From IMG/VR virus record IMGVR_UViG_3300010334_000023, positions 124,001 to 188,000 of that record: a stretch of 64,000 nt of DNA; one strand, written 5' to 3'. Below are positions 44,378-62,300 of this stretch, in pieces. The position numbers and the translations under genes were made by a program. The notes beneath the pieces were generated by a model. The model was not told the DNA's origin. It made no database searches and saw only the letters and a list, made by a program, of their open reading frames with translations. Numbering within the stretch: position 1 is the first letter of the stretch; each line of letters begins with the position of its first letter.

Positions 44378-45652
44378 TCAAGCAGCCTGTCCGATCTCTT
44401 CCACACCCGTGTCGTGATCATAGTAGGCATACTGACCAAACGGTGGCTTCACGCGAGTCTTGTGACCCTCTGTGATGATCCACAGCGTGTCGCAGTAGCT
44501 CTCTGGGCCCCAAGTACCAAACGGATAACCGTCTGTGAACACCACTGCTTTCTTGGGCTCGATCTGCTCACTCATCCAATAGTTCCAGAACGCCATGAAA
44601 TCTGTACCGCCGCCACCCTTGCATTCATAGTTCAGCAGGTCGTCTGCGCTGTCCTTGGTGAACTTCTGGAAGTTATAGACCTGTGTGTCAAAGCAAAGGA
44701 TGCTGATGGTGAAGTCATTGTACATGCTCATGATGCCATAGACTTCACTGAGAAAGTCCTTGGCCATGCTGTCGCTGATGGAACCACTCATGTCGATAGC
44801 AATGGCAATGTCAATGGTATCGTCCTTGTCCAGTGTTGGCAGGAAGATGCCACCATACATGTGCTTGCGATTGGGGCGCATCCAGGTAAAGTCATCAGTG
44901 ATGCAGCTCTGGATGTTCTGCTGCAGGAGATCGCGCCAGTTGATCTTTGGCTCTACCAGATCATCAATGATGCGCTGTAGGCTAGCTGGCATCTTGCCAG
45001 CACTAGCCTGCGCTGCCTGCAGCACCTTGTTCTTCATCTCTTCGCGGATCTTCTTGAGATCTTCTTCGCTGACCTTGATTGGATTGCCATCCTTGTCCAC
45101 GGCCTGTCGACCCTTGCCATCCTTGCCGTTGCTGTCACCGCCAAGCTCCAGATGCACGTCCATGGTCAGCTGCTTCTTGACCTTGCGCTTTTCGAGATCA
45201 TCATAGACTGCCTCAGAAGTCCAACCCAGATACTTCTCATCATACAAGCCCACACGCTGGTTGGTCTCGCCCTTGTCGTCAACCTCGGTGACCTTCTTGG
45301 TAGGCATCTTGCCGATCTTATCTGAGGTAAGCATGCCGTTGATCACATAGTCGTTGGCCATGTTCCACCAGCTGGGGTCGCGGTGCGTGCGGCGACCAAA
45401 ATGGTCCAGAGCCACGTGCAGCACCTCGTGGCACAGCACGAACTTGATCTCGTCGATGTCAAGGTCCTTGAAGAAGTCTCGATTGTAATAGATGTTGCGG
45501 CCGTCCACGGCTGCAGTGCTGCACCAACCTGCGTCAGTGGCATCTACCAAAGGCAGCTGCATGGTCAGCGTGCCAAAGAACGGCGTCTTGAACAGCAGTT
45601 CCAGTCGCGCTTGGCTGATCTTCTTGGTGATTGGATCTCGTTGAATTGACAT
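44378..45652 (-). CDS. HExxH metallopeptidase-like plus vWA domain protein (DUF2201-type)
   Basis: TAAVDG, LCHEVLH, WNMANDYVIN; MIDAS IDMSGSI, GGGGTDF, VFTDGY; GGAGG RBS before ATG 45652. Confidence 0.85.
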   Translation of the reverse strand: MSIQRDPITKKISQARLELLFKTPFFGTLTMQLPLVDATDAGWCSTAAVDGRNIYYNRDFFKDLDIDEIKFVLCHEVLHVALDHFGRRTHRDPSWWNMANDYVINGMLTSDKIGKMPTKKVTEVDDKGETNQRVGLYDEKYLGWTSEAVYDDLEKRKVKKQLTMDVHLELGGDSNGKDGKGRQAVDKDGNPIKVSEEDLKKIREEMKNKVLQAAQASAGKMPASLQRIIDDLVEPKINWRDLLQQNIQSCITDDFTWMRPNRKHMYGGIFLPTLDKDDTIDIAIAIDMSGSISDSMAKDFLSEVYGIMSMYNDFTISILCFDTQVYNFQKFTKDSADDLLNYECKGGGGTDFMAFWNYWMSEQIEPKKAVVFTDGYPFGTWGPESYCDTLWIITEGHKTRVKPPFGQYAYYDHDTGVEEIGQAA

Positions 45653-45671
45653 TGTGTACCTCCAATGAACC

Positions 45672-45699
45672 ATGATAGCACATATTACCAGGGCGTCAA
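45672..45699 (-). promoter_or_regulatory. Sigma70-type early promoter TTGACG-N16-TATCAT
   Basis: Intergenic; TGC immediately before the -10, shared with sister promoters. Confidence 0.65.
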
Positions 45700-45726
45700 C
45701 CACTAAGCTGACGCCCTGTGAGTTAT

Positions 45727-48505: not shown

Positions 48506-48981
48506 GCTTTGCTGATCCTTTTCTTTTGGCTCATGGCATTCTGCATCTCCAGCTTGGTGCGGAACGGGCCTATGAACTCATTCTCTTCCAAGGTCTGTGT
48601 GCGCGGGCAGTAGCTGCCAGTCCAGCCATGTTCAAAATCCAACGCATAGTATCCCGCAGCGAATCTGGCCTTGCCCTTGGCGGTCTTAGCATAGGTAACT
48701 ATAGCACCTTCTTCCACATCAAACACTGCCTTGTGCTTGATTGGATAGCCGTTGATCTGGCCAATCTCATCGTCCTTGTCGTCATCAGTTTCACGTGCTT
48801 CTATCTGCAGGTTACCACCTAGAAAAGCAGTTAGCTCGTCGGCGTCTGCGAACAGCTTGCGATCAAACGGACCAATGACCTTGAAGCCTTCCACAGTTAC
48901 AGTGACCAACCCAGCATTGCTGCCATCCTTTTCAAGGATGTAGCTGGCTTCCGTGATTTCCTTTAGCTTGTAGCTGCTCAT
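48502..48981 (-). CDS. Hypothetical phage protein
   Basis: ATGA coupling to the nuclease gene; FAAGYY...CP...FIGPFRTK. Confidence 0.7.
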   Translation of the reverse strand: MSSYKLKEITEASYILEKDGSNAGLVTVTVEGFKVIGPFDRKLFADADELTAFLGGNLQIEARETDDDKDDEIGQINGYPIKHKAVFDVEEGAIVTYAKTAKGKARFAAGYYALDFEHGWTGSYCPRTQTLEENEFIGPFRTKLEMQNAMSQKKRISKA

Positions 48982-49967
48982 GCTGTTTCCATCCTCAGTT
49001 GCCCATCGTATTGTGCACTGAAACAGGGTGCGAAGTCATTCACGTTCTTTTCGATCCTGACCAAGCCGTTGATGTTGCAGTAGCGCATGAGGGCCAGTCC
49101 GATCTGCTTCTTGACTGATTGGTTGACTTCGTCGATGATCAGCCTGTCAAACTTGTCTATGAGATCCAACGGCTGTTGAGTTAGGTCGATCAACATGCGA
49201 TTTCTCTCGTAGTCGTCCCGCACTCTGTGTTCTACATTCTCGTGATCTAACCACTTGCTAAGCATGAGGTTATTCCACGCATATCCGCGATTATGTCGGT
49301 CTTCGTAGGCAGCTTCTAGCTTGGTCTTGCGCACACCTGGGAACGCACTCATCACGTTGTCGCTGTCATCCCCGCGCATGCACTTTTCAAACAGTATCCA
49401 TTCTGGATTTGGCACAGGCATTGGCTTGCCTTGCTTGTTGATTGCCAGCTTGCCATCTTGATCATAGATGCCTGTGTGAGTGTATAGCAGGCTAGCTATG
49501 CCATTGTATAGTATGACATTTTCTGCGATCAGCTGCTGGAAATCACTGTCGCTGCTGATGATCACGTGCTTGTCATCTGGATGCAGCTGTATCCAGCGTG
49601 CGATCATGTCGTCTGCTTCAGCGTTTGGATGGCGCAGCACCGTGCAGTTGGTCTTGTTCTTGATGAATTCCACGAATCCATCCATGCTTTCGAAAAACAG
49701 CTGGTCTTCTTCGATTTCTCGTTCTGTGCGTTTGGCAGCTGCTACCTTGCGGTTTGCCTTGTATGGCGTATACACATCCTTGCGCCAGCTTCGTCCTTCC
49801 AAGCAGAAAACGGTATGGCTGCCACTGAATTCTGTCCATACCTTCTTGATGCTGTTGAATATTATGTGCTGCGCCATGCCCAACTGAAGTTCAGTGCTAG
49901 GAGCTCTCACACCATGGCGCACTCTCATGAATAGGTTCTGAGTATCAATTATTAGATAAGTTGCCAT
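48978..49967 (-). CDS. rnh: T4 RNase H-like 5'-3' exonuclease / flap endonuclease
   Basis: LIIDTQN, SWRK..Y..YKANR, EADDMIA, ISSDSDF.QL, GDDSDNV; GGAGG RBS. Confidence 0.9.
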   Translation of the reverse strand: MATYLIIDTQNLFMRVRHGVRAPSTELQLGMAQHIIFNSIKKVWTEFSGSHTVFCLEGRSWRKDVYTPYKANRKVAAAKRTEREIEEDQLFFESMDGFVEFIKNKTNCTVLRHPNAEADDMIARWIQLHPDDKHVIISSDSDFQQLIAENVILYNGIASLLYTHTGIYDQDGKLAINKQGKPMPVPNPEWILFEKCMRGDDSDNVMSAFPGVRKTKLEAAYEDRHNRGYAWNNLMLSKWLDHENVEHRVRDDYERNRMLIDLTQQPLDLIDKFDRLIIDEVNQSVKKQIGLALMRYCNINGLVRIEKNVNDFAPCFSAQYDGQLRMETA

Positions 49968-49983
49968 GCTCGCCTCCATCCTG

Positions 49984-50011
49984 AGTATAGCACAGCTGCG
50001 ATCTATGTCAA
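49984..50011 (-). promoter_or_regulatory. Sigma70-type promoter TTGACA-N16-TATACT
   Basis: Near-consensus with TGC before the -10. Confidence 0.7.
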
Positions 50012-50014
50012 CTG

Positions 50015-50596
50015 TTAGTTCTTGCGCCAGTACCAACCATCGTTGGCAACCATGCGCACCTGCTTGCTGGGTATACCCTGGGCTTTGGCCCAGCTGGTAA
50101 CTGCGAAATTAACTGAAAACAGGTTAGCATCATGTCCAGCGACCAATCCGCCTGGGCGCACTTTTGGTACCCAGCTGTCCAAATCGGTTAGAACCTGCTT
50201 CATGCTGTGACCACCATCTATGAACACGAAATCATATGCTTGGTCTTCCAGCAGTGCTGCGGCTTTTTGGCTGTCTTCGCGTATGAAGTTGAACCTGTCG
50301 CCCATCAGAGGTAGGTTGGCCTGCAGTATGGCATAGTTGGCTTCTGCTTCCATCCTGCTCACTGGTTTGTCCCAGTCGTGATAGGGTGCGTAATGATCAA
50401 TGCCTGTCAGCATGGCTATGTTTGGACATTCGTTGAGCATGAACCAGCTGTTGATACCAAGACCCACACCTATCTCGATGCCTATAGCAGGATAGGGCAT
50501 GCTCTTTAGCTCGTCCAGGATGCCTCTGCTGGCCTGCTGCCTATAGATGCGAGGCCAATCCGGGCTGTCAAACAGTGTTGTAAGTGTCTGGTTCAC
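50015..50596 (-). CDS. Class I SAM methyltransferase (Methyltransf_24-like)
   Basis: EIGVGLG, GIDHY, DFVFIDGGH, PGGLVAGHD; CATAAATA 4 nt upstream. Confidence 0.8.
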   Translation of the reverse strand: MNQTLTTLFDSPDWPRIYRQQASRGILDELKSMPYPAIGIEIGVGLGINSWFMLNECPNIAMLTGIDHYAPYHDWDKPVSRMEAEANYAILQANLPLMGDRFNFIREDSQKAAALLEDQAYDFVFIDGGHSMKQVLTDLDSWVPKVRPGGLVAGHDANLFSVNFAVTSWAKAQGIPSKQVRMVANDGWYWRKN

Positions 50597-50611: not shown

Positions 50612-51205
50612 TTAGCTATGCTCGGTCTTACCATCCTCTCGCCGAATGCGACGAACATTGCTGACAAACTCTGGATCAGTGGGGGCCATCTCTGCTAGTA
50701 TGCTGTTACAGACATCGTTTAGCCAGCGGTTGATCACGTCCTCGTCGCTGCCCTGATAGTTATTAGCTCGCAGAGACTGCACGAATGCATCGTTGTAATC
50801 TAGCTCAAAGAAGGTCTTGCTGGGATCAACCGGGTCCCAGCTGATCTTGGGCATGGCCATGTAGGGTTCGTTCTTGATGTCTGCGGCCTTGCGTTCGTGT
50901 TCTGGTGCGCTTATGCGATTGTGCTTGAGTTCCACATCCAGCTTGGCCAGTGCCAACGCAGTCTCGTCAGAGTTGTCTAGTTCTGCCAATCTGCTATCGC
51001 GATCATAGGCGCTGATCTTGCCGTAAGCCAGATCGATGTCCAACACGCTCTTGGTAAAGGCCGGGCTATCTAGCCCGTGGCCGATCCGGGCCTTGGCAAT
51101 GTCTAGATCATAGCCTGTGAGATAGTATTCAGCTTCTGCCAGTTCTCGGCTCTTGCCTTTTAGTCCCCAGGCAGCTGGTAACCAACCAAACGGTATCTTG
51201 CTCAT
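50612..51205 (-). CDS. Hypothetical phage protein
   Basis: Start at MSKIPFGWLP; FFELDYND...INRW. Confidence 0.65.
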   Translation of the reverse strand: MSKIPFGWLPAAWGLKGKSRELAEAEYYLTGYDLDIAKARIGHGLDSPAFTKSVLDIDLAYGKISAYDRDSRLAELDNSDETALALAKLDVELKHNRISAPEHERKAADIKNEPYMAMPKISWDPVDPSKTFFELDYNDAFVQSLRANNYQGSDEDVINRWLNDVCNSILAEMAPTDPEFVSNVRRIRREDGKTEHS

Positions 51206-51207
51206 GC

Positions 51208-52119
51208 TTATCTTCCTATCACGTTGCTGAAGATCCAGCAGTGTATGCGAGCTGCTACGTTGTAGCCGCGCTTGAGCGCTTCTTCCGTGACCCACATCTG
51301 CACGTCTTCCTGTTCTTCTCGAGTAGCCCCCACAGGCATGACCCACACTGGCCAGTTCACGTCTGCTGCGCGGAAAGCATCAACTGCTCGCTCTAGTTCA
51401 TCCCAGGTCAGTGGATTCTTGTCAAGCACGAACTTCAGCTGTCCGTGATTGCTGATCAGCCTGTATTCGCGCACGATCTCTGGCTTGATAGCATCTGTCC
51501 AGCTCTCGCCTGAAGTGCCCAGCTTGGGGCTCACGCTCCAGAACAGCTCGCCATTGTACATGCCGCGATTGTTAAAGAACTCATCAAAGTTCTTGCGCAC
51601 AGCCTGCGTGCCGTTGGTCTCTATGGTGATGTGGCGAGGCATGTCCATCTGCATGCGAAGCGTCTGCATGATGTCCACGATGCCTGTCTGGCTCATCATG
51701 GGTTCGCCGCCGGTGAATGCTAGATGCACGTCCTGTCCGCTGCGAGGATGCACAAATGATCCTCCCTGCAGCCTGCTGCGAAAATCTGCGCAGATCTCTT
51801 CTGCTGTGCTCTGATGTGCCAGATGGCCATACTTGGTGCTCCAGCTGTAGCTGCTATCGCAGCCAGTTGTCCACACCGGCAGATCATCCATCTTGGTGAT
51901 GCCGTTGGCCTGAGGGTCGTATTCCTGATAATCTAGCTTGTAGGTGCTGCGATCTCTGGGATTAGCCTGTCCAAATCCGTCACAGTTGAAGTTGCAGCCC
52001 CAGAAGCGTATCCAAACTGTGGGATGACCAGCATACCTGCCTTCGCCCTGTATGGTAGGAGTAGGACCAGCGTTGCCTCCAAAGGTCTCGCTGTAACGGT
52101 ACTTCTTGGCAGTGCTCAT
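51208..52119 (-). CDS. queE: 7-carboxy-7-deazaguanine synthase (radical SAM)
   Basis: TIQGEG..AGHPTVWIRFWGCNFNC...CDS, FTGGEP, IETNGT, SVSPKL, RIH; clustered with queD and folE. Confidence 0.9.
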   Translation of the reverse strand: MSTAKKYRYSETFGGNAGPTPTIQGEGRYAGHPTVWIRFWGCNFNCDGFGQANPRDRSTYKLDYQEYDPQANGITKMDDLPVWTTGCDSSYSWSTKYGHLAHQSTAEEICADFRSRLQGGSFVHPRSGQDVHLAFTGGEPMMSQTGIVDIMQTLRMQMDMPRHITIETNGTQAVRKNFDEFFNNRGMYNGELFWSVSPKLGTSGESWTDAIKPEIVREYRLISNHGQLKFVLDKNPLTWDELERAVDAFRAADVNWPVWVMPVGATREEQEDVQMWVTEEALKRGYNVAARIHCWIFSNVIGR

Positions 52120-52337
52120 GGTTGCTCCTTGCTCAGCTTATAGATCATTATAGCTTGATCCAGCACTTCGCGCAAGGCTGGATTATCTTTGGCTGCGTGC
52201 TTCATGTCATGCCATAGATATAGGTTTTGATAGTAGGGATCTGAAGGATCGCGCTTGACTAGCCAGCGATCCATGTGTCCAAGCTCCCTGGCATACACAG
52301 TCTTACCATCATCTGGGCTTTCAAAGATCAGCGGCAT
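52116..52337 (-). CDS. Hypothetical protein
   Basis: IFESPDDGKTVYARE; coupled to neighbours. Confidence 0.65.
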   Translation of the reverse strand: MPLIFESPDDGKTVYARELGHMDRWLVKRDPSDPYYQNLYLWHDMKHAAKDNPALREVLDQAIMIYKLSKEQP

Positions 52338-52531
52338 CAGGGGCCCGCGGGAGCTTCTGGTTCAACTTTGCGCACTATCACATGGCCAGTGGTCTCGTCT
52401 GTTTCCCAGTTGATGGTATCGCCTTCCTTCCAACCAAGCTCTGCCATGAGGTCTTCTGGAAACTGCAGGAACAGCTCACCGTTTTCGTCCTGCTGCACGT
52501 CAACGACCATGCTGCGTTTGGTATCAGTCAT
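52337..52531 (-). CDS. AbrB/MazE-like swapped-hairpin small DNA-binding protein
   Basis: GELFLQFPEDLMAELGWKEGDTINW pattern; GGAG RBS before ATG 52531. Confidence 0.65.
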   Translation of the reverse strand: MTDTKRSMVVDVQQDENGELFLQFPEDLMAELGWKEGDTINWETDETTGHVIVRKVEPEAPAGP

Positions 52532-52757
52532 TCTTTTCTCCAATGCCCAGTGTTGCAGGCGAATGATCCAGGTATGGTTCGCCATTCTTGCTAGTGTAGA
52601 AATACGCATCCTCATCGTTGATGGTAACCATGAGATCGCTGTGATAGATGTCGTAGTCTGTGAACATGCCGTCTGGCTCATAGACTCTGAACACCATTGA
52701 TCCACCTATGGGCAGCAGCACACCTGACATACCGTTGGCATTCTGTGGTTTGGTCAT
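52524..52757 (-). CDS. Hypothetical protein
   Basis: TGATG coupling; FRVY...FTDYDI.H.DL. Confidence 0.6.
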   Translation of the reverse strand: MTKPQNANGMSGVLLPIGGSMVFRVYEPDGMFTDYDIYHSDLMVTINDEDAYFYTSKNGEPYLDHSPATLGIGEKND

Positions 52758-53347
52758 CAGTCATCCTTGCTCAGCGCACGCCATACCTTGGCCTGTTCGC
52801 GCATGCTTTCGTACTCTTGTTCCATGTGTTGGAGCTTGTGCAGCGTGACATCCATGATGGTCTGGATAGCAGCATCCACAGCATCGTCGTAGTCATCACC
52901 CAGCTTGCGCATTGGTTCGTAATCACGTTCCAAGTTGCGATCCCGCTTCATGATGCCCATGAGACGTTCCAAGCGTTCCAAGCGTGCGAACAGTCCGTCG
53001 TCGCTATTCGTGGCACCACCTTGGAAGATGTCACCGTTGGCACTGATGCTTATGGTCTCGCGACCACCAATGGTGGTCCAAGTGTTAGTGCCTCCCGTGT
53101 TAGTCGTTAGCACTTGGTTAGGGTAGCCTGTTCCAACGCCACCGCCTCCACCTGTCACGGTTATGTAGGGTGTTGTCGCACTGGTATAACCGGTACCTGC
53201 GGACGCCATGGTTATGGAACTGATACCACCATGCGCACCGAGGTGTGCGATAGTAGATTTTGTACCAGTGCCGGTGTAGGTAATAGATGTAAATCCACCA
53301 TTGTTAACCACGGTACCGTTAGCGAGAGTGGCAGTTGTTGTGGTCAT
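52757..53347 (-). CDS. Hypothetical protein with T/G-rich N-terminus and coiled-coil C-terminus
   Basis: ORF track and composition. Confidence 0.6.
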   Translation of the reverse strand: MTTTTATLANGTVVNNGGFTSITYTGTGTKSTIAHLGAHGGISSITMASAGTGYTSATTPYITVTGGGGGVGTGYPNQVLTTNTGGTNTWTTIGGRETISISANGDIFQGGATNSDDGLFARLERLERLMGIMKRDRNLERDYEPMRKLGDDYDDAVDAAIQTIMDVTLHKLQHMEQEYESMREQAKVWRALSKDD

Positions 53348-53349
53348 GA

Positions 53350-53643
53350 TCAGCGCCTCAGACTATGCTGCATGATGATGCTGGTCAGCTCTGGACCGAG
53401 CTCGGTATCATCATGTACTATATATAGATCGCGTTCATGTTCACCCCTGCGTTCGTCCCAGTGGCTGATCTCTATGACCCTACCGCCGTGCGCAGCATGT
53501 ATGCGTATGGTAGCTGCTCCTCGCGTGTCCAGTTCATGAGGGGATCGCATTGGCTTAGCAGTTGTAGATATGACATTGTATTCATGGACCGACTCCCAGG
53601 CTTTCTTGGCTTGCCGTTGGAACCATCTGTCAAACCATTTCAT
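53350..53643 (-). CDS. Hypothetical protein
   Basis: ORF track; AGGTG upstream. Confidence 0.6.
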   Translation of the reverse strand: MKWFDRWFQRQAKKAWESVHEYNVISTTAKPMRSPHELDTRGAATIRIHAAHGGRVIEISHWDERRGEHERDLYIVHDDTELGPELTSIIMQHSLRR

Positions 53644-53744
53644 TTGGTCACCTTTTTTTTGATATCGTGTATCCGGGGTGGATCATTGCTGCTGCGTCGC
53701 ATGATCAAACATAGCTATCATGTTTTGAAAATCTGTTTCAGTGT

Positions 53745-54239
53745 TCATATCAGTTCCTCGTTCCACTCCCTGTGTCCTTCTCTAAAGGCCATGTTAGCTT
53801 GCGTTTCGCGCACTTCTACGCGATAGCACCATAGGCGTTCTGACTCGCCTTGGCCCCAGAGATCTGGGATGTATACACTGTTAATATAATTGTATAACAT
53901 GTCAGCTAGGCCTTCGCAACCAAGCCGGGGTAGGATAGTGAGCTTGGCTAGACGCTTGCTTTGTAGCAACTTAAACGTTTCCAGTTCCGGATCATCTTCT
54001 GCTACCAGCAGCGTGTGATCAAACTGGTCTTCCAGGGTCTTCTTGAGTTCCTTGAGACCGCCATAGTCAGCTGCCCAGTTGCGCACATCCAGATCGTTGG
54101 TGCCAAAGTAGAACTTCATGCTGAACGCATAGCCGTGGATCATGTTGCAGTGGCTGTCAGCACGCCACTGGCGATATGCGCAGGGAAATGCATCCACGTA
54201 TTCCTTGGTGCTGGTGTACTTGTAGGTGATTGGTGTCAT
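53745..54239 (-). CDS. queD: 6-carboxy-5,6,7,8-tetrahydropterin synthase
   Basis: SHCNMIHGY (CxxxHG), DYGGLK, FDHTLL, VEVRET; AGGAG RBS. Confidence 0.9.
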   Translation of the reverse strand: MTPITYKYTSTKEYVDAFPCAYRQWRADSHCNMIHGYAFSMKFYFGTNDLDVRNWAADYGGLKELKKTLEDQFDHTLLVAEDDPELETFKLLQSKRLAKLTILPRLGCEGLADMLYNYINSVYIPDLWGQGESERLWCYRVEVRETQANMAFREGHREWNEELI

Positions 54240-54246
54240 GTTTGTG

Positions 54247-54310
54247 CTCCTATGTTGTTATACCATAGGCTGCAGAATTTGTATAGCGGGAATGAAGCCA
54301 AGCGCCGCTT
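54247..54310 (-). promoter_or_regulatory. Structured queD leader: candidate pseudoknot/riboswitch with RBS-sequestering hairpin, overlapping a possible internal promoter
   Basis: AGCGG/CCGCU stem, A-rich linker, loop GGCU complementary to downstream AGCC, CCUAUG/CAUAGG hairpin covering AGGAG. Confidence 0.45.
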
Positions 54311-54317
54311 GTCATAC

Positions 54318-55004
54318 TTATCTTGGTGCGAAATCTTGCTGAAGCTTGACATTGTCGAAGAACTCTTTTTTAGTGCTCTGATCGTTAAAGAACGCGCCTC
54401 GCAACACCGTGGTCTGTGTTAAGCTGCTGTGTGCCATGATGCCGCGATTCTCGCAGCAGCCATGAGAAGCTTGTATGTACACAGCCACGTTCTCGCTGTC
54501 TGTGGCTCTTTGTATCTCTCTGGCTATGTCGTTGCAGAGCTCTTCCTGCAGAGTCCCACGCCTAGCGCACCACTGAGCAATGCGAGTATACTTAGACAGT
54601 CCGATAAGCTTACCAGCGGCAATGATCCCAATATAAGCAACACCGTGAACGGGTTGGTGATGATGGCTACAAACACTACGCAGCTCGCTGCGAACCACAA
54701 GCATACCTTGGTAACGATCTTCGCTGTCATTGGGAAAAGCTGTAGCAGCTGGGATTGGGTCATATCTACCTCGCATCAGTTCCTTGACATACATCTTGGC
54801 CAGGCGTCGGCCCGTGTCATGGCTGTTTGGATCATTCTCGCGATCGATGATCAAGCTGTCTAACACCGCGTCGAACCGTGCATTGAGCTCGTCGATTAGC
54901 TGATCTTGTTCTCCTGGTTCTATGTATGCGCTGATGTTGTCGTTGGCATTGAATCTAGCACCGGCGGCTTTGATACGCTGGCGAATGGTTTCACTTACTG
55001 TCAA
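54318..55004 (-). CDS. folE: GTP cyclohydrolase I
   Basis: DTGRRLAKMY, SVCSHHHQP, IGLSKYTR, LQEEL, HGCCENRG; TTG start with GGGAG RBS. Confidence 0.95.
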   Translation of the reverse strand: MTVSETIRQRIKAAGARFNANDNISAYIEPGEQDQLIDELNARFDAVLDSLIIDRENDPNSHDTGRRLAKMYVKELMRGRYDPIPAATAFPNDSEDRYQGMLVVRSELRSVCSHHHQPVHGVAYIGIIAAGKLIGLSKYTRIAQWCARRGTLQEELCNDIAREIQRATDSENVAVYIQASHGCCENRGIMAHSSLTQTTVLRGAFFNDQSTKKEFFDNVKLQQDFAPR

Positions 55005-55044
55005 CTGTTGTCTCCCGATGTTGTCGCAGTGGGTTGCGTGCGTT

Positions 55045-55073
55045 ATTGTAGTCTATTTAGGCGGTGTGCGCAA
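55045..55073 (-). promoter_or_regulatory. Composite folE promoter: TTGCGC-N17-TACAAT with late motif CTAAATA (55054-55060) inside the spacer
   Basis: Direct sequence. Confidence 0.5.
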
Positions 55074-55646
55074 CTAGAGTTCTGCGCTAGCCGTCCATGA
55101 TCCGGTAGTCATGTCATCGGCTGTGACCCCTGGATGATTGTACATAGGCGGAACCGCTCCGTAGCCTTGCTGATAACCACCGTTGGGACCCATGCTAGTC
55201 GATCCTTGGGCTCCTGTAGCGACAGCAGCACCATGCGGAATTTGAATGGCTGGATTGAGCTGCAGAGTGGAAGTGATCTGATTGATATTTGGCAAGGTAA
55301 TAGTGCCGATGCGCTTTGTGATGTCATCTTGGCTCATGCCAAATCTATCATTTATCCTTTCATTGTCACGCTGCTCCCAGATGCTGGACTGGTGATCATC
55401 TTCGTTCATCACCAGTCCAGCCATGACTGGATCACAGCCTTCGTCTATCATCTTGGTGATGACCTGTCGCATGTTGCTTAACTCGCGGGTTATGCGTGTG
55501 CGTTCGTTTGACAGGTCCAACCTTGACTGTTCGTACTTTTCGCGCAGGTCCTGGCTGTCCTGCTCGTTTTGTTTGAGCTTGTTTAGTGTCTTGCGATAGC
55601 GATAGAAATAGCTATCCATGGCTTCTAGGCGCTGAGTGTCGTTCAT
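55074..55646 (-). CDS. Hypothetical protein with coiled-coil N-terminus and low-complexity C-terminus
   Basis: ATGA coupling to the upstream gene. Confidence 0.6.
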   Translation of the reverse strand: MNDTQRLEAMDSYFYRYRKTLNKLKQNEQDSQDLREKYEQSRLDLSNERTRITRELSNMRQVITKMIDEGCDPVMAGLVMNEDDHQSSIWEQRDNERINDRFGMSQDDITKRIGTITLPNINQITSTLQLNPAIQIPHGAAVATGAQGSTSMGPNGGYQQGYGAVPPMYNHPGVTADDMTTGSWTASAEL

Positions 55647-56170
55647 GCTACGGTATCCTGACCATATGCCGTCCACGGTGTGAAAGTCTTTCGATCCATG
55701 AGATCATGCAGGCTATGCACCCAGACTCCTGGATTGGATGCTTTGAAGCCCGTGTCATCGATCTTCACGCAGGTGTTGTAGTTGGCCAAGCCTGCGTATG
55801 GTAATTTCACAGAGATCTGCGGTATGAACTGGCTGTGGCTGATAGCACTCATCTCAGCAACACCCAGCCAATGTTCGAGATCAAAGTCCAATGTGACCCA
55901 GTAACCTCGATCCAGCAGTGCTACACAGAGGTCATCCCAGCTCTTCCAGGCATCGTAATCTTCGTAACCACTCACTTTGAAGCTTTGGTTAGCACCCAGA
56001 TAGATGTGCTTGCAGACCCTGTATCGAGCCGTGTCAGCAACGTCGTCCACATCCTGCCGACCAACCACGAACAGCGTGTGTGCGCCCTTCATCGGAGTGT
56101 TTTCTACTTCGTAGCCCGTGAAGTACTTCACGTCTGTCTTTACGCCATCAATGTAATCTCGTTCCATCAC
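55643..56170 (-). CDS. Hypothetical enzyme-like protein in the deazaguanine cluster
   Basis: Coupled to the dpdA-like stop; FTGYEVE..TLFVV, HIYLGANQSF, WVTLD, KIDD..F.ASNPGVW. Confidence 0.7.
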   Translation of the reverse strand: MMERDYIDGVKTDVKYFTGYEVENTPMKGAHTLFVVGRQDVDDVADTARYRVCKHIYLGANQSFKVSGYEDYDAWKSWDDLCVALLDRGYWVTLDFDLEHWLGVAEMSAISHSQFIPQISVKLPYAGLANYNTCVKIDDTGFKASNPGVWVHSLHDLMDRKTFTPWTAYGQDTVA

Positions 56171-57825
56171 ATGTCCTCCACGCTCATTGACACATCGTTG
56201 TTGGCATCCATGCCTGTGATGCTCTGCAGCATCTTCTCATGCTTCATTATCAGATCCATGGGGCGTTCACTGGTAAAGATGTCCTCTACTAGATCCTTGA
56301 ACTCCAGCAGATCTGGTGTCAGCAGTTCCTTGGCTTCGCTGATTGGTCTGTCCTGTGCCATGTTGGCTGCCTGTATGGCATTGACATGCAGTTCAGTGTT
56401 GTGGTTCATGGCCAATAGGTAGCTGAAACCATCCATGCTGCTAGGCCACTTCTCTTGATACTTGCTGTGGCTGTCAGCAAAGCGTGCTGTGCCGAGATCA
56501 AACACGCCGCCGTTCTCGTGGCTGTGTATGGCGTACTCCTTGTAGGCTTTGGTCCACTTGAACGGATCATTGGCCTTGCCTTCGGGAGTTGAAGCCCAGT
56601 AGCCGCTTTCGATTTCTTTCTTGGTAAAAGCTACCTTCTTGCTTTCAAGGTCATCATAGCCCCTGCAGCAGATGTCTCCCACGCTGACCTGATCGCCTAT
56701 CCTGCTGCGCACTGGCGTTAGCTTCTTGGGCAGGTTGTTGGCAATCCAATCGTTGAGCAGCTGTGGGTTGTTCTTCAGCTCTTTCTTGTCCACGATTGGA
56801 CCGCCCTTGAAGCCAACATTGTCCGCGCTGAGCTCATGTCCGTAGTACATCTGTCCCTTAGCAGTCATCACAAACGGGCTGGCTGCGTCGAAGCTGATGG
56901 TCAGCTGTGGATCCACATGCTTCCGCAGCGCACGCTGCAGGGATGTGAGAGCACAGCCAGCCTTGATCTTACCGTTACCCAGATAGTGCAGCCACTCACG
57001 TCCTGAGAGATAGTTTTCATCTCTCATGATGATCAGTCTGCGCAGATTAATGGTGAAGTTACTTGCCTGCACGTTGGAGAACGCCCAGCTCTCAAAGGGC
57101 AGGTCCTTGGTGTGCTCCCACCACACGTCACCTTCTTCCATGTTGCGTCCCTGTAGGACGTTGAGGAACTTGGTGGCACCCTCCCTGCGATTCTTGATGA
57201 AGAAGTTGTGGTTGTCCAGGCTGCCAGTCAAGCAATCGCTGAAGCTCTTGAGGCTGGGATGCAGACTCTCGCCTGTGACTGGATCAAGACCATATTTGAC
57301 CAATGCGTAGGTAGGCCAGTCCAATACCATGCTATAGTCTGCCGTGGCTTCTAGCCAACGCAGCAGCTTCATTCGCACATCGTCCTTGTCGTTCTGATGT
57401 TCTTCCGGTGTCTGCTTGGGCTTGGCATGCCATGGATACTTGAGCACACCGGTAGCAGCTTGGAACCCACCTGAATCGCCTAGCAGCACAGTGTTAGCGC
57501 GATCGCGCTGCTGCACCATGCTCTCCTGCACCCAGCTATCCTGCGGATCCAGTATGGCATGTCCAGCTGAATACAGTGCTACTGGATAGTAGAAAAGGCT
57601 GTTAGCGGGATCGAGGAAGTTGAGATCCTTGAGTCCCTGTGGCAAGCCCTCGGGCATGGTGTCGCGCATGTTGTACTGAACCATGCTGACGATCTTGGCA
57701 TAGATCATGCTGATGCTGGGCAAGAACAGGGCATAGTCATTCTGCGTAGCGGCCATGTTCCTGCACTTTGCGTTGAAAGTGAGGTGGTCAGTGTCAAAGC
57801 TGAATCTCTGGAAATCTTTTTTCAT
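56167..57825 (-). CDS. dpdA: TGT-fold guanine transglycosylase, probably DNA-acting (DpdA family)
   Basis: LGDSGGFQ, MVLDWP, NVLQG, HYLG, SFDAASP and late HN match TGT catalytic motifs; no canonical CxCxxC zinc site; clustered with folE/queD/queE in a phage. Confidence 0.8.
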   Translation of the reverse strand: MKKDFQRFSFDTDHLTFNAKCRNMAATQNDYALFLPSISMIYAKIVSMVQYNMRDTMPEGLPQGLKDLNFLDPANSLFYYPVALYSAGHAILDPQDSWVQESMVQQRDRANTVLLGDSGGFQAATGVLKYPWHAKPKQTPEEHQNDKDDVRMKLLRWLEATADYSMVLDWPTYALVKYGLDPVTGESLHPSLKSFSDCLTGSLDNHNFFIKNRREGATKFLNVLQGRNMEEGDVWWEHTKDLPFESWAFSNVQASNFTINLRRLIIMRDENYLSGREWLHYLGNGKIKAGCALTSLQRALRKHVDPQLTISFDAASPFVMTAKGQMYYGHELSADNVGFKGGPIVDKKELKNNPQLLNDWIANNLPKKLTPVRSRIGDQVSVGDICCRGYDDLESKKVAFTKKEIESGYWASTPEGKANDPFKWTKAYKEYAIHSHENGGVFDLGTARFADSHSKYQEKWPSSMDGFSYLLAMNHNTELHVNAIQAANMAQDRPISEAKELLTPDLLEFKDLVEDIFTSERPMDLIMKHEKMLQSITGMDANNDVSMSVEDM

Positions 57826-57830
57826 GTTTC

Positions 57831-57859
57831 AGTATGGCCTATGGCGGTGATCTTGTCAA
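57831..57859 (-). promoter_or_regulatory. Sigma70-type promoter TTGACA-N17-CATACT, 5 nt before the dpdA ATG (leaderless geometry)
   Basis: Direct sequence; identical geometry to the thyX promoter. Confidence 0.6.
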
Positions 57860-58953
57860 GCACGAACCAGCTCTTGGATCAAGGGAGTTGCGGTGAAGAA
57901 CTTGGTACTAACCTGCTCAGCTTCTGAGCTAGCATGGCTTGACAAGCTGTTGCGGTTCATGAGGTAGCGTATGTGAGTGATCAGCTTGTCCTTGTTGGCT
58001 TGATAGCTGTCCCAGTTCTTGGTCCATTCGCTGGGATAGCATTCGCTCCACATCTCTGAGTAGCTGAGTCGGTCTGGCACCATGGGATAGGTTCCAACCA
58101 ACGCTGCTTCATACATTGAGATGCCCAGAGTTTCTTGCAGGTTAGCGCTGAAAGCGATCTTGCTCTCTGCGAGATGCTGATGGTATTCGTCCTTGGAGAG
58201 CTTCTGTTCCTGTGCCACAAACCATTCATATTCTGGCATGGCTTCGGCCAAGTCCTTGAAGATCTCCAGCTGCTTCTCTGGTGCCAGACGATGCGGGAAT
58301 ATGATCTTGTCTCGCTTGGCTGTGGTAGCATAAGGAGCTAGCAGTGGCTGCATGTATTCCATGGGCCAGCCGGTGAGCTTGAGCCGGTTGATCTCAGAGT
58401 CTGGGAAACCAACGATGAACTCTTCGGTCTCATCCTCGGCAAATAATGTCTCTACGCCCAGCAGCTGTCTCAGGAACAGGTTGCTGTGGAATCGCGTGGC
58501 AAACCAGTTGGTGTCATAGGTGTAGAACATGCTGCATTCAGCATTGCGTACCCAGGGTTTATCGCCAACCAGACGTCCCAGGAAGTCCTGTGGATCATAG
58601 CTGCCAGCGTGCCAAAGACCGTGTATCTCAATCTTTTTGCCAAGCAATTCAGCCATGTAGCGCAGCTGGATCACTGTGGGATTCCACGCATCTGTGTAAA
58701 GGAACTTGTCGCCGTCTTGTATCTTGCCATCCCTGAACAGCTGTGCTATCACGCTCAGCTGTGATGATTTGTAGATGTTGGTAGCACCAAAATCCAAGAA
58801 CGCACCTGGCGTTGGTGTGGCAGGTACCTCGTCTCCCTCGATGATGGCCACGGTGTCCACGCCTGCCCCATCCAGCAGGATAGGGATGTGATCATACCAT
58901 TGGCGAGTGTAGCGCGTGTCAATTGGTTCGATGGGGACAACGTACACTGTCAT
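57856..58953 (-). CDS. GT-B glycosyltransferase with QTMAN/GTDC1-like motifs
   Basis: IIFPHRLAPEK and FSANLQETLGISMYEAALVGTYPMVPDRLSYSE (GT4-like E-x7-E signature); TAATG coupling to the upstream T-fold gene. Confidence 0.8.
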   Translation of the reverse strand: MTVYVVPIEPIDTRYTRQWYDHIPILLDGAGVDTVAIIEGDEVPATPTPGAFLDFGATNIYKSSQLSVIAQLFRDGKIQDGDKFLYTDAWNPTVIQLRYMAELLGKKIEIHGLWHAGSYDPQDFLGRLVGDKPWVRNAECSMFYTYDTNWFATRFHSNLFLRQLLGVETLFAEDETEEFIVGFPDSEINRLKLTGWPMEYMQPLLAPYATTAKRDKIIFPHRLAPEKQLEIFKDLAEAMPEYEWFVAQEQKLSKDEYHQHLAESKIAFSANLQETLGISMYEAALVGTYPMVPDRLSYSEMWSECYPSEWTKNWDSYQANKDKLITHIRYLMNRNSLSSHASSEAEQVSTKFFTATPLIQELVRA

Positions 58954-59339
58954 TATTCTGCATCCCACTTCAAGATGGCACCGTTCTCTCCATCTTCTGA
59001 GACTTCAATCCACACTTCGCGTCCTGGCCACTTATCTATTATCTTCTCATATAGTTCTTCACTAATCATCTCACAGCTGCGATAGTTTAGCTGTAAGGTT
59101 TTTTGATCATATAGCTTCTCAAGCCATCTTTTTGCCTGTAAAAATTCCACATCACGGTCATTATGCGTGACAGAGATCCAAACTTGGAAGTGGAAGATGT
59201 GGCGATGCGGATAGCCCAAGAAGCTGACATCGTACTCGTCGCCTGTGGCCAGAGCTGGATCTGTGAGTGCTGCGGGATACTTGTGGATGCCTTCTTTCTG
59301 GAACTTTACCCAGATCATTCTCTTGCGTGGATCTGCCAT
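58953..59339 (-). CDS. dpdL: QueD-like T-fold protein, candidate CDG decarboxylase (DpdL-like)
   Basis: LGYPHRHIF (LxxxHRHxF), RDVEF, SCEMI, VSEDGENG; second T-fold gene in a cluster lacking queC. Confidence 0.65.
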   Translation of the reverse strand: MADPRKRMIWVKFQKEGIHKYPAALTDPALATGDEYDVSFLGYPHRHIFHFQVWISVTHNDRDVEFLQAKRWLEKLYDQKTLQLNYRSCEMISEELYEKIIDKWPGREVWIEVSEDGENGAILKWDAE

Positions 59340-59364
59340 GTGATATCTCCTATGATGATATAAG

Positions 59365-59393
59365 ATGATAACACAGGTCAGAGATTTTCACAA
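59365..59393 (-). promoter_or_regulatory. Sigma70-type promoter TTGTGA-N17-TATCAT for the dpdL-GT operon
   Basis: Intergenic; AGGAG RBS downstream. Confidence 0.5.
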
Positions 59394-59396
59394 GTG

Positions 59397-62300
59397 CTAG
59401 AGATCCAAAGCAGTCCTAACCACCTTTATCACCATGTTTTGGCTGGTATTCGGGGTGAACAGCAGCTCAACTATGCCTCCCACGATGTCAGCAGACCAGA
59501 TGCCGAGGCTGGTGCTGGTATAGATGTCAGCATATTCAGTGAAAAACACATCTGTACCATCTTGGATCAGCATCAGTTGGCTGCTCTGATAGCTGCTGGT
59601 AGCAGTGTTGGTTATCTGCAGCAGATAGTGCGCTGTGCGGAACTGAGTGGTTGGCCACGAATCAACCACAGATTGGAAGGTGCTGTTGCTGGTATAAGCA
59701 TTACCGTCTAAGACCCAGGTGTTGCCGCTAACATAGCCGTTGCTCTGCAGCACCTGTACGTTGGCAAAGCCAATGCTGTTGATCTGGTTGAAGCTGCCTA
59801 TGTTGGCATAGCTAGCAGCAACATCGTTGGTGACCGTGAGATTGCCCAATACTGACAGGTTGTTGTTGAAAATAGTGCTGTTGCTGACTGTGAGATTGCC
59901 TAGCACAGCAAGGTTAGACGCAAAGGTGCTGTCCTTGCTCACTGTGATGTTGCCCAGCACTGATAGATTGCTGTTGAAGAGGCTGTCCTTGCTCACTGTG
60001 ATGTTGCCCAGCACTGATAGATTACTGCTGAAACTGCTGTCAGTGAGAACAGTGATGTTGCCTAGCACAGCAAGGTTAGACGCAAAGGTGCTGTCCTTGC
60101 TCACTGTGATGTTGCCCAGCACTGATAGATTGCTGTTGAAGAGGCTGTCCTTGCTCACTGTGATGTTGTTCTGGAACACAGCAGCATTGGACACGCTTAG
60201 TGCACCGCCCACTGAGAGATCGCTGCTTATGTTGGCAGCATAAGCATATAGTGCTCCGTACACAGCTAGATTGCTGCTGACATTCACGTTGCTGGCTATG
60301 AGGCTTAGATTACCTAAGCCATTGCTGGTGCTGCCGCCGCTGGCCAAAATCCTCGCATCATAGTCGTTGCCAAATATGCTGCTATGGAAATCCACGTATG
60401 GTGTGCCAGCTGTGATCCTATTCTGCTGTCCCAGCTCTATGCTGCCATTGGTATCACCACCGATGATCACAGTGCCTGTGGTACCTGAGCTGGCAGTTAG
60501 GCTGCCACCAACCAGCGCATCCAATCCTATGGCAGCCCCGCCCTTGGTCACAAAGCTAGCTGAGCTTAGACTGCTGCTGTTAACTGTGCTGTTGATCAGC
60601 AGCCCTTGTCCATAGATGAACCTTGCCACTTGATTAGCAGCCGCATTGCCACCTTGGGCAAACACGATGTCGTTGTTGAGCATGGTGCCGAGCACGAGAT
60701 TACCACCGCCCGTGACAGCGTTACCGTACATCAATAGGTAACCATCGTTTGCATGGTCAATGGTAGCTTGGTTCCATCCGCTGCTGTTGATGCCCAGATC
60801 TATGTAGGTGTTGACAGCAGTGCCATTATCCGCTGTGACCACTATGTCTGCGCTGGCGCTGTCACCTGAGCTGTCATTGTGCACGTTTATCTGTGAGCTG
60901 GCATTTACGTTGCCTGCGAACAGTGCTACGGTATTTGGTTGGTAATTGGTATAGTCCTGCACACCAGCGTAGAGCGCAGCAAAGCCGCCGGCTCCGCCTG
61001 TAAACGTGCCGGTCTTGCCACTGATTATGCTGGTATTGCTACCGTTTAAGTTTCCACCTAGCCTGATGTTTAGTCCAACATCCAGGCTGGACACGTTGGC
61101 AGTATTAAGAACAGCGAGATTAGCAGTGTTCAGGCTGACGTTGCCGGCATCCCAGAACAGGCTAGCACTGTTGCCACTGAAGGTATTGCTGTTGCCGGCA
61201 AACTGTATGGTATATTGTGGACCAAAGCTTGGTGTATAGGATGCTGCTGTAACCTGGAAGCTGCCATCTGGGAACAGTATGCCACTGGTAGTTGATGCTG
61301 TGTTACCTATGTGTAGGTTACCATAGACATCCAGTGGATATCTAGCAGTGCTGGTGCCGATACCTATGTTCGAGTTGCTGATCAGCGTGTTAGCAACAAA
61401 GTTTGGCGCAGATATCAGTCCTGTAGCTAGTACATTCTGAGTGAACAGCGTGTTCACGCCTATGATGTTGCCTCCTGATCCAGTAGTAGTGATAGTACCG
61501 CTGGTAACAAGATTACCAACCGTGGCGTTGCCCGTGGACTGTATGGTAGTGTTGCTGATCAGACCATTGACGGTGGCTGTACCGGCGCTCTGTATGCTGC
61601 TGTTGCTGACCAAGCTGCTTCCGATAATAGCACCGTTGGCCTGTATGGTTGTGTTGCTTAGCAAGCTGTTAGCAGTGATGGTATCTGCTGCCTGTATGCT
61701 GGTGTTGCTGATCACTGTGTTGAACAGACCGGTACCAGGTGCCTGGACGTTGCTGCCGCTCACTATGTCATAGAGCTGTGCCAGTCCCAACGACTGTATG
61801 GTAGTGTTGCTGAACAGGCTGTTGCCTGTGATCGATCCGTTGGCCTGTATGTATGTGTCGCTGGCAATGCTGCCTGCGATCACCGCACCGTTGCTGATCA
61901 TGCTCTGACCAGTTATGGTACCATTGGCCTGTATGAAGCTGTTGCTGATAAGATGTGCAGCTCTGACAAAGCCCACAGATTGTACATAGATATTGGTTTC
62001 CAGCAGCTGTCCGTACATGCCAAAGGTTGAGTAGATCTGGGTATTGCTGGTGATTATCTCAGCAACCAAACGCCTGCCGGCTGTGATATTGTCTGCTGAA
62101 ACGTTACCGCTGACATCCAGCCTGCCACCGATGAGCACGTTGCCATATACTTCCAGATTGGCCTCTAACAGCGCACCATTGCCCACCACCAGATTATCTG
62201 TGAACACGGTGTTATCGGCAGTGATGTTGCCGTTGCTGTTGAAGCTGTTGGCTCTGATCTTTCTGCTAGCAGTGAGAAATTCTGTGGTGATGTTGCCGCT

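Follow-up and report, generated by a model that had tools for sequence, protein, structure and literature searches.

A 64,000-nucleotide stretch (hereafter the window; positions 124,001 to 188,000 of IMG/VR record IMGVR_UViG_3300010334_000023) of an uncultured freshwater jumbo phage encodes the proteins that put 7-deazaguanine into DNA, and a dedicated glycosyltransferase (GT) gene is fixed beside them in this and many other phages. This suggests, but does not prove, the presence of a sugar-decorated guanine analogue, and no paper describing a glycosylated 7-deazaguanine in DNA was found. The locus lies on the minus strand and encodes QueE, QueD, FolE, a 552-aa TGT/DpdA-fold protein, a 365-aa GT-B glycosyltransferase and a 128-aa DpdL. 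Every feature listed in a preliminary description of the sequence was found to be present where it had been placed, and the observation is therefore confirmed. The interpretation offered with it, a glycosylated 7-deazaguanine DNA modification involving a GT resembling QTMAN/GTDC1, is only partly supported. The arrangement is far beyond chance, as the same gene set recurs in hundreds of loci.

The deazapurine biosynthetic genes could be assigned on the basis of profile searches. QueE (51208-52119), the radical-SAM 7-carboxy-7-deazaguanine (CDG) synthase, matches a QueE-like PHROG (2076; E 4.7e-50) and Pfam Fer4_12, and shares 32% identity with QueE of phage PA5oct. QueD (53745-54239), the CPH4 synthase, matches Pfam PTPS (E 2.9e-16) and PHROG 2389 (E 9.3e-36), and is the phage variant with C-x3-H-G-Y in place of C-x3-H-G-H, a variant shared with the ACP17 and phiST QueD proteins. 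FolE (54318-55004), GTP cyclohydrolase I, matches PF01227 (GTP_cyclohydroI; E 2.7e-38) and PHROG 2197 (E 1.1e-44), and is 69% identical to Phosso FolE. Using tblastn with E. coli QueC, no hit was obtained in the window at E < 1, while QueF gave only two chance-level hits (E 0.34 and 0.79), although the window covers only 64 kb of what is probably a much larger genome. The T-fold protein DpdL (58953-59339), a QueD paralogue proposed to decarboxylate CDG to 7-deazaguanine (DG) in the study that defined the family (Cui et al. 2023; PMC10516641), incorporates the sequence LGYPHRHIF, which fits the LxxxHRHxF motif, and matches PHROG 17812 (E 2.5e-31). It is homologous to phiST DpdL (34% identity), and shares 62, 57 and 51% identity with its counterparts in Phosso, PA5oct and ACP17, respectively, while hhalign against a QueD profile gave an E value of 7e-5.

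The TGT/DpdA-like protein (56167-57825) showed no Pfam hit, but its AF2 model (pLDDT 86) comprises a TGT-fold TIM barrel with a C-terminal helical extension, and all nine PDB Foldseek matches at E <= 1e-3 (E 1e-5 to 1e-4) are TGT/QTRT chains or the DNA preQ0 insertase DpdA (7ui4). The motifs GDSGGFQ, H280-x-LG and Y-D313-A-A-S are invariant, hhalign to ACP17 DpdA gave an E value of 9.5e-4 with the motifs in register, and the protein is 31% identical to the 540-aa neighbour of the GT in PA5oct. It is presumed to insert the base into DNA. As the superfamily includes tRNA enzymes and DNA rather than RNA specificity cannot be read from the fold, the TGT-fold enzyme and the GT could instead act on tRNA or other RNA, giving a glycosylated deazaguanosine analogous to mannosyl- or galactosyl-queuosine. 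This appears very unlikely, however, considering that the phage-encoded members studied so far all insert into DNA (PMC10516641), that no QueC or QueF providing a route to queuosine was found in the window, and that the window has no tRNA genes. Furthermore, PA5oct DNA resists cleavage at G-containing restriction sites, and a modified G is suspected but not identified (PMC12191111). No specific likeness of the GT to QTMAN was found either.

The GT gene (57856-58953) is translationally linked to dpdL, with the dpdL stop and GT start overlapping as TAATG, while the GT stop is situated 30 nt before the dpdA start. The true GT start is the ATG at 58953 rather than the GTG at 58968, as homologues begin with MTVY. 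The AF2 model (pLDDT 86, pTM 0.84) shows a GT-B fold of the GT4-like retaining type. Pfam Glycos_transf_1 matches only weakly in 18 of 23 family members, with scores below the family thresholds, and a catalytically dead protein serving as a structural or regulatory partner of DpdL or DpdA could be envisaged. This possibility is remote, as the predicted catalytic set is intact, with the diphosphate-binding R222/K227 pair and both glutamates of E274-x7-E282 invariant down to about 30% identity, and as sugar-tailoring genes flank the GT in several lineages; the inference of activity rests on sequence and linkage alone. The likeness to QTMAN/GTDC1 claimed in the preliminary description is not supported. 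The segments on which it was based are the generic GT4 R-x4-K and E-x7-E motifs, no DUF3524 hit appears in any of 23 family members, and GTDC1 is not among the 30 best Swiss-Prot fold matches, which are BshA, MshA, glycogen synthase, PimB/C and ALG2. QTMAN (GTDC1) and QTGAL, which form mannosyl- and galactosyl-queuosine in animal tRNA, likewise decorate a 7-deazaguanine derivative in a nucleic acid, and GTDC1 is classified in CAZy family GT4, but their acceptor is a hydroxyl of the cyclopentenediol of queuosine. The GT also does not group with cellular lipopolysaccharide or capsule GT4 enzymes. It belongs to a small, discrete and almost wholly viral family, with its profile retrieving only 2051 of 1.84 billion representative proteins at E <= 1e-3, while the only close BFVD models are two phage proteins, one from ACP17 and one an unnamed entry.

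Co-occurrence of the GT with DpdL and DpdA, which had been set beforehand as a test of the interpretation, is strongly supported across several unrelated phage lineages. DpdL lies directly upstream of the GT in 75 of 75 GT-seeded IMG/VR loci with upstream DNA, and the GT lies downstream of DpdL in 72 of 72 DpdL-seeded loci with room. All three distant metagenomic family representatives examined (profile E about 1e-54) retain DpdL immediately upstream, one of these on a 67-kb contig that also encodes RusA and SSB. Among 50,697 phage records, 22 hold the GT, 28 hold DpdL and 17 hold both. Six cultured lineages, namely the PA5oct group, Phosso, ACP17, BUDD/X1, BCSR5 and the cyanophage BUCT-ZZ01, keep the GT with the FolE/QueD/QueE/DpdA/DpdL genes, although in Phosso dpdA lies about 170 kb away. 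However, most of the 152 informative IMG/VR loci belong to one large clade with shared synteny and are not independent, so that independent support rests on about seven to nine lineages. Some lineages encode additional sugar-tailoring proteins. These include an LmbE/PIG-L-like protein with a PHVDDE motif in BCSR5 and BUDD, an NDP-sugar epimerase/dehydratase next to the GT in one lineage (L094) and a second GT in BUCT-ZZ01.

This linkage also bears on whether the GT glycosylates something other than the deazapurine, such as another DNA base, a virion or host protein or a cell-envelope glycan, and resides in the cluster only through co-regulation. Fold and motifs fix only the donor side, phages often carry GT4-like enzymes for other purposes, and a remote relative in PhiXhv-12 is located with GlmS and a deacetylase, with no deazaguanine genes within 8 kb. 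Nevertheless, this reading is unlikely, as DpdL-GT adjacency, often with overlapping or abutting ends, persists through extensive rearrangement in unrelated phage types, and within the family proper no GT was found without DpdL, except where the contig is cut. Scans of this region found no pyrimidine hydroxymethylase. In phage DNA, T4 glucosyl-5hmC and the arabinosyl-5-hydroxycytosine of RB69 and DLP3 (PMC13326640) provide examples of phage-encoded transferases placing a sugar on a non-canonical base as an anti-restriction measure, but all known cases are O-linked to a hydroxyl on a pyrimidine, whereas here a purine-type base without a hydroxyl would be modified. A cyanophage DNA alpha-GT model is only a generic GT-B match to the window GT (rank 24, TM about 0.5).

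The best reading, considered about as likely as not, is a phage 7-deazaguanine DNA-modification module with one extra tailoring enzyme. The gene identities, the QueC-less gene complement, the conserved GT motifs and the linkage are supported by the present analysis, and the conversion of GTP to CDG by FolE, QueD and QueE is established biochemistry of these families. By contrast, the conversion of CDG to DG by DpdL has been proposed (PMC10516641) but not shown biochemically, the exchange of guanine in DNA for the deazapurine by a divergent TGT-fold DpdA is inferred from fold and family, and glycosyl transfer from a nucleotide sugar onto the DpdL product is inferred from linkage, without chemical data for any GT-bearing phage. 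In this view, packaged DNA would carry a glycosylated 7-deazaguanine rather than plain dDG, with the expected benefit of protection from restriction and other nucleases. The closest comparable system, that of Cellulophaga phage phiST (FolE, QueD, QueE, DpdL and DpdA3; PMC10516641), uses the same QueC-less route, the same DpdL family, a TGT-superfamily inserting enzyme and the same QueD variant motif, and this pathway gives dDG in phiST DNA. However, phiST gave no tblastn match to the GT, and its DpdA3 is 259 aa in length, while the DpdA of the window is not detectably DpdA3-like (hhalign E 0.18) and is followed by an additional conserved protein, p175. The DpdL of RHph_I1_18 is 60% identical to that of the window, yet no GT match was found in that genome by tblastn at E <= 1e-3, which suggests that the GT is an add-on acting after an unchanged DpdL step.

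As DG has no hydroxyl group and offers no ordinary O-acceptor, the exocyclic N2 amine is the most plausible acceptor, with C7 a more exotic alternative. N- or C-glycosylation of a deazapurine by a GT4-like enzyme has a precedent only in secondary metabolism. In the actinomycete huimycin and dapiramicin pathways, HuiG, a GT with the Glyco_transf_4 domain, glycosylates a preQ0-derived 7-deazapurine base, a 7-deazaguanine-type heterocycle made by FolE, QueD and QueE, using UDP-GlcNAc (bioRxiv 10.64898/2026.04.15.718813). The sugar is placed on the 2-amino group in these pathways, which act on a free base with no DpdA and no nucleic acid target. Transfer to the free base before insertion is slightly favoured over transfer on DNA, as the GT is tied more tightly to DpdL than to DpdA, its nearest structural relatives act on small molecules (BshA on malate and MshA on inositol phosphate), and it is strongly acidic (pI 4.9, net charge about -18), which does not favour direct DNA binding. 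The DpdA-like protein is acidic too, and a structure-based test of a DpdL-GT complex gave no answer. The same properties, together with the distant dpdA in Phosso, the HuiG precedent and the phosphoribosyltransferase-like genes in some clusters, would also be compatible with a soluble glycosylated 7-deazapurine, either a huimycin- or dapiramicin-like metabolite or a storage or transport form of DG, with DpdA inserting plain DG. This alternative is considered unlikely, as the DpdA-like gene co-occurs in every GT-bearing lineage examined and a lytic phage has no obvious use for a secreted metabolite. Furthermore, ACP17 DpdL plus DpdA without the GT gave no dDG (PMC10516641), which fits a DpdA that needs the glycosylated base.

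The best structural matches to the GT, BshA and MshA, are retaining GT4 GlcNAc transferases that are paired with the LmbE-family de-N-acetylases BshB and MshB, respectively, although these thiol-cofactor pathways use malate or inositol phosphate as acceptor. Relatives of the GT in BCSR5, BUDD and PhiXhv-12 are situated beside LmbE/PIG-L-like genes, and in the BUDD and BCSR5 lineages this suggests GlcNAc transfer followed by de-N-acetylation. No LmbE-like gene lies in the window or in the loci of its clade.

Three further proteins are encoded alongside these genes on the minus strand. The p175 protein (55643-56170) occurs directly after DpdA in 66 of 67 GT-seeded loci that hold DpdA, and a homologue is located just upstream of ACP17 dpdA (HMM E 4e-27). 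It has no Pfam, PHROG, NCBIfam or PDB hit, but may be a DpdA accessory protein. The p244 protein (50612-51346) follows QueE in 53 of 80 loci as well as in PA5oct and Phosso, with only viral unnamed clusters being observed in the Atlas. By contrast, p200 (55074-55676), for which no family hits were obtained, is found only in the closest relatives of the window, in 4 of 80 loci.

Within the window, positions 42-64 kb are transcribed on the minus strand, and the genes follow one another in the order of transcription as a 1532-aa repetitive protein, fibre-like by its repeats (59397-63995), DpdL (58953-59339; 128 aa), the glycosyltransferase (GT; 57856-58953; 365 aa), a 552-aa DpdA-like protein (56167-57825), p175 (55643-56170), p200 (55074-55676), FolE (54318-55004), QueD (53745-54239), four small unknown genes (52116-53643), QueE (51208-52119), p244 (50612-51346), a Methyltransf_24 protein (50015-50596) and a 5'-3' exonuclease / RNase H (48978-50036). 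The stop codon of DpdL and the start codon of the GT share one base, as TAATG, while the GT stop is located 30 nt before the start of the 552-aa gene. For the GT, the ATG at 58953 was preferred over an alternative GTG start at 58968. Comparison by tblastn with E. coli QueC found nothing in the 64 kb, while QueF gave only chance-level hits, and no tRNA genes are present in the window. The preliminary description, which had listed folE, queD, queE, a TGT/DpdA-like gene and a GT-B gene translationally coupled to a T-fold gene with the LxxxHRHxF motif, with no queC or queF, is thus correct in every particular. Megablast comparison of the 8.1-kb region against phage records gave no match.

The DpdL protein carries the signature LxxxHRHxF, in place of the CxxxHGH of QueD, which Cui, Hutinet and colleagues used to define the family (PMC10516641). 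This is present as LGYPHRHIF in the window protein, and H45, R46, H47 and F49 are invariant in the DpdL alignment (A6). Homology to the founding member of the family, phiST CGPG_00067, was observed both by tblastn (34% identity, E 6e-11) and with a family HMM (E 6.9e-21), and the protein is likewise homologous to the ACP17 protein tested by the same authors. The genomic context of FolE, QueD, QueE and a DpdA-like gene without QueC, as far as the 64-kb window extends, is that of the DpdL family. With regard to a T-fold related to that of QueD, alignment of the DpdL profile against a QueD profile with hhalign gave an E value of 7.3e-5 and a probability of 63% over 43 C-terminal columns, while no Pfam PTPS hit was obtained. 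In the Vibrio phage Bakedbeans (L176, 5221-6372) and the Chryseobacterium phage MA9V-3 (L179, 5470-6351), DpdL appears as the C-terminal part of longer annotated proteins of 383 and 293 aa, respectively, which suggests fusions to unknown N-terminal domains. The QueD of the window carries C-x3-H-G-Y in place of the canonical C-x3-H-G-H, a variant shared with the QueD proteins of ACP17 and phiST and with nine of the ten IMG/VR relatives aligned, while the QueD of locus L093 has the canonical form.

The 552-aa protein could not be recognised on the basis of sequence alone, with no hits in Pfam, NCBIfam or PHROGs, or among PDB entries using phmmer and hmmsearch, and it was identified only through a fold search. 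A confident AF2 model (pLDDT 86) has nine PDB Foldseek matches at E <= 1e-3, all of which are bacterial TGT, QTRT1/2 or the DNA preQ0 insertase DpdA (7ui4), with TM scores by target of 0.42-0.53. The motif G116-D117-S-G-G-F-Q and a later aspartate, D313, are invariant and align with the DSGGLQ and SYDS motifs of ACP17 DpdA. The protein belongs to the TGT/DpdA superfamily, but it could not be placed in DpdA3 or in another of the named subfamilies (DpdA1-4), with hhalign E values of 9.5e-4 to ACP17 DpdA, 0.017 to BUDD and 0.18 to phiST DpdA3, and it may form a further subfamily. Its action on DNA rather than tRNA is inferred, the only evidence being the indirect observation that PA5oct DNA is resistant to restriction. 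The gene is followed in 66 of 67 loci by p175, a 175-aa protein with no detectable family and a homologue directly upstream of ACP17 dpdA, which may represent a DpdA accessory subunit, although it was not found in the PA5oct, Phosso or BUDD regions examined. A PDB profile search with p175 returned nothing, and comparison of p175 and p244 against the protein Atlas gave only sub-threshold leads (glycoside-hydrolase-like fragments at 0.88) or unnamed viral clusters.

The GT gives a confident GT-B model with two Rossmann-like domains (AF2 pLDDT 86, pTM 0.84). Three rows derived from annotated GenBank loci were left out of the alignment used for the structure prediction. There are 174 PDB matches at E <= 1e-3, led by glycogen synthase, BshA and MshA with TM scores of 0.55-0.65, and the Swiss-Prot neighbours agree, with the best matches across the two databases being the retaining GT4 enzymes BshA, MshA, glycogen synthase, PimB/C and ALG2. 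The Arg/Lys pair that binds the donor diphosphate (R222 and K227) and the glutamates of the C-terminal E-x7-E motif (E274 and E282) are invariant in two family alignments (A1 and A2) and are kept, invariant or nearly so, in the 20 distant members of a third (A4), even among members about 30% identical. The enzyme therefore looks active, although glycosyl transfer itself is inferred from fold and motifs. At the level of sequence it is a divergent outlier of the superfamily, as the window protein scores only 14.2 bits against the Pfam Glycos_transf_1 gathering threshold of 26.4, and eighteen of twenty-three family members match weakly (best E value 1.7e-5). A PDB profile search with the GT returned a single weak hit to a putative GT (8xsg, E 0.013). 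A likeness to the queuosine-tRNA mannosyltransferase GTDC1/QTMAN had been proposed in the preliminary description, but is not supported. The segments on which this was based are the generic R-x4-K and E-x7-E motifs of GT4 enzymes, no hit to DUF3524, the N-terminal domain of GTDC1, was found at E <= 1 in any of the twenty-three family members, and GTDC1 is absent from the 30 best Swiss-Prot AlphaFold matches. In the absence of QueC, QueF and tRNA genes in the window, queuosine is also not the expected product, although the analogy to glycosylated queuosine remains useful as an idea.

The co-occurrence of the GT with dpdL and dpdA, which had been set out in advance as a condition that could refute the proposal, proved strongly positive. 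Among cultured phages, tblastn found the GT in 22 records, DpdL in 28 and both in 17. In PA5oct, Phosso, ACP17, BUDD and BCSR5 the GT is located inside the FolE/QueD/QueE cluster beside DpdL, and in all but Phosso it is also found beside a DpdA-like gene. The T4-like Synechococcus phage BUCT-ZZ01 was missed by tblastn, and would on that count have been considered a DpdL phage lacking the GT, but the family HMM finds the GT (E 1.6e-22) starting one base after DpdL ends. The remaining apparently GT-less lineages were checked only by tblastn and, except for Bakedbeans and Ahp1, by annotation of the local context. Among 80 GT-seeded IMG/VR loci, 75 have DpdL directly upstream, with the other five cut within about 400 nt of the GT, while 72 of 72 DpdL-seeded loci with room have the GT downstream. 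Most of these loci belong to one large clade which shares the order DpdA, p175, DpdL, GT, FolE ... QueE, p244, RNase H with the window, and they are thus not independent. Independence comes from the cultured lineages and from three deliberately distant representatives (profile E about 1e-54), all of which keep DpdL immediately upstream, one of them on a 67-kb contig that also encodes RusA and SSB. The family is also sharply bounded, with a profile search of 1.84 billion representatives returning only 2051 proteins at E <= 1e-3, and with the ACP17 protein and one unnamed phage entry as the only close viral structure models. This is not an LPS or capsule enzyme that happens to lie nearby, and the functional coupling of a dedicated GT to the DpdL/DpdA pathway is well supported.

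The genes found alongside the GT in other lineages provide indirect hints about the sugar. In BCSR5 (positions 6806-7513 of locus L089) and BUDD (from about 6830 of locus L006, where the annotated start omits the motif), an LmbE/PIG-L-like protein with a PHVDDE motif is encoded two genes upstream of the GT-DpdA pair, which recalls the BshA/BshB and MshA/MshB logic of GlcNAc transfer followed by de-N-acetylation. A gene of this type also lies beside the family member of PhiXhv-12 (L090, 7276-7884), where GlmS, deacetylase and GT stand as a trio without deazaguanine genes within 8 kb, so that an acceptor cannot be inferred from this context. In locus L094 the GT is followed by an NAD-dependent NDP-sugar epimerase/dehydratase. 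The cluster of BUCT-ZZ01 (L177, 1453-7527) comprises QueE, xanthine-guanine phosphoribosyltransferase, QueD, FolE, a second GT (447 aa), DpdA, DpdL and the family GT, and weaker phosphoribosyltransferase-like genes also occur in L094 and PA5oct. It may be inferred that such an enzyme could recycle the guanine released by DpdA back towards GTP. The LmbE-like, epimerase/dehydratase and second GT neighbours argue that the product is a stable, further-tailored glycoconjugate. However, the clade of the window shows none of the LmbE-like, epimerase/dehydratase or second GT genes, and the sugar may thus differ between lineages. A uracil-DNA-glycosylase-superfamily protein (Pfam UDG, E 1.9e-5) follows the GT in L093 (9110-9619), and a protein annotated as 'glycosylase' precedes DpdL in Phosso (L001, 8017-8550).

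In terms of mechanism, the synthesis of CDG by FolE, QueD and QueE is shown by homology, whereas the conversion of CDG to DG by DpdL is a proposal of the literature, not shown biochemically even for phiST, which has dDG in its DNA and gave no match to this GT. Action of the GT on the DpdL product, the transfer of a sugar from a nucleotide donor and the insertion of the base into DNA are inferred here. The DpdL of the Rhizobium phage RHph_I1_18 is 60% identical to that of the window, yet this complete genome gave no tblastn match to the GT, and DpdL thus probably has the same function with or without the GT, with the latter an added downstream step. The gene directly after DpdL in this phage (L004, 8408-9232) is annotated as an Appr-1-p processing (macro-domain) protein, but a Pfam scan did not confirm a macro domain. 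As DG has no hydroxyl, the 2-amino group is considered the most reasonable acceptor. The huimycin enzyme HuiG glycosylates a preQ0 derivative with UDP-GlcNAc; in huimycin the sugar is carried on N2. The evidence does not decide between transfer before and after insertion, but leans slightly towards the free base, considering the tighter tie of the GT to DpdL than to DpdA, which Phosso keeps about 170 kb away, the small-molecule acceptors of the nearest structural relatives, and the acidity of the GT. Net charge was rejected as a decisive indication of DNA binding, however, as the DpdA-like protein is acidic too, and a predicted complex of a DpdL trimer with the GT gave no answer and is not used either way.

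The interpretation offered in the preliminary description, that the phage may carry a sugar-decorated deazaguanine in its DNA through a QTMAN-like enzyme, is therefore supported in part: a glycosylated deazaguanine is the best single reading but, on present evidence, about as likely as not. It would explain two loose ends, namely that ACP17 DpdL plus DpdA gave no dDG in E. coli, for which the authors suspected missing enzymes, and that DNA of the phage-therapy candidate PA5oct resists several enzymes with G in their sites through a suspected G modification that has not been identified. Literature searches found no report of a glycosylated deazaguanine in DNA, and the 2023 paper (PMC10516641) does not mention a glycosyltransferase. 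Eight 7-deazaguanine derivatives are known in phage DNA, none of which carries a sugar, while known DNA glycosylations are all O-linked to hydroxylated pyrimidines. A wider possibility, which is tentative and slightly less likely than not, is that a very large and widespread group of phages replaces guanine in its DNA with a sugar-bearing 7-deazaguanine, including the therapeutic Pseudomonas jumbo phage PA5oct and its relatives, Phosso, ACP17, BUDD/X1, BCSR5 and the cyanophage BUCT-ZZ01, as well as thousands of uncultured phages in public metagenomes. This would be the first glycosylated purine-type base in any DNA and would need unusual N- or C-glycosidic chemistry, as the base has no hydroxyl. 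In this view lineage-specific sugars are likely, such as GlcN through an LmbE-type deacetylase, a deoxy or epimerised sugar, or a disaccharide where a second GT is present. The GT family is abundant, with at least 8000 clusters at 90% identity, many on contigs of 100 to 500 kb, and such a modification would affect how much environmental phage DNA can be sequenced and cut, as well as presenting a target for modification-dependent defences such as END nucleases and DNA glycosylases.

The phage of the window is from fresh water and, on the basis of the region 54300-59400, occurs in many freshwater and lake metagenomes from 2017 to 2023. Contigs from a lake metatranscriptome library cover most of the operon at 100% identity, which fits expression in nature but does not prove transcription. 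A 24.6-kb IMG/VR contig (L007; IMGVR_UViG_3300009151_005895) encodes a GT 100% identical to that of the window, with the same gene order from DpdL to p159, and is probably the same phage. By synteny the lineage is related to the jumbo phages PA5oct and Phosso (RNase H 47% and 43% identical, respectively; AAA ATPase 49% identical to PA5oct). The class I SAM methyltransferase just downstream of the QueE-p244 pair (50015-50596, minus strand; Methyltransf_24, E 1.5e-18) is present in only 4 of 80 related loci. The protein encoded directly upstream of dpdL (59397-63995, minus strand) is highly repetitive and Asn/Ser/Thr-rich. Elsewhere in the window, a 3701-aa open reading frame (13361-24466, plus strand) is located downstream of the baseplate wedge and hub genes, a 464-aa protein (37349-38743, plus strand) has a weak radical-SAM PHROG match (E 4.5e-7), and a 441-aa HNH endonuclease (44378-45703, minus strand; E 4.5e-116) is possibly a homing endonuclease.
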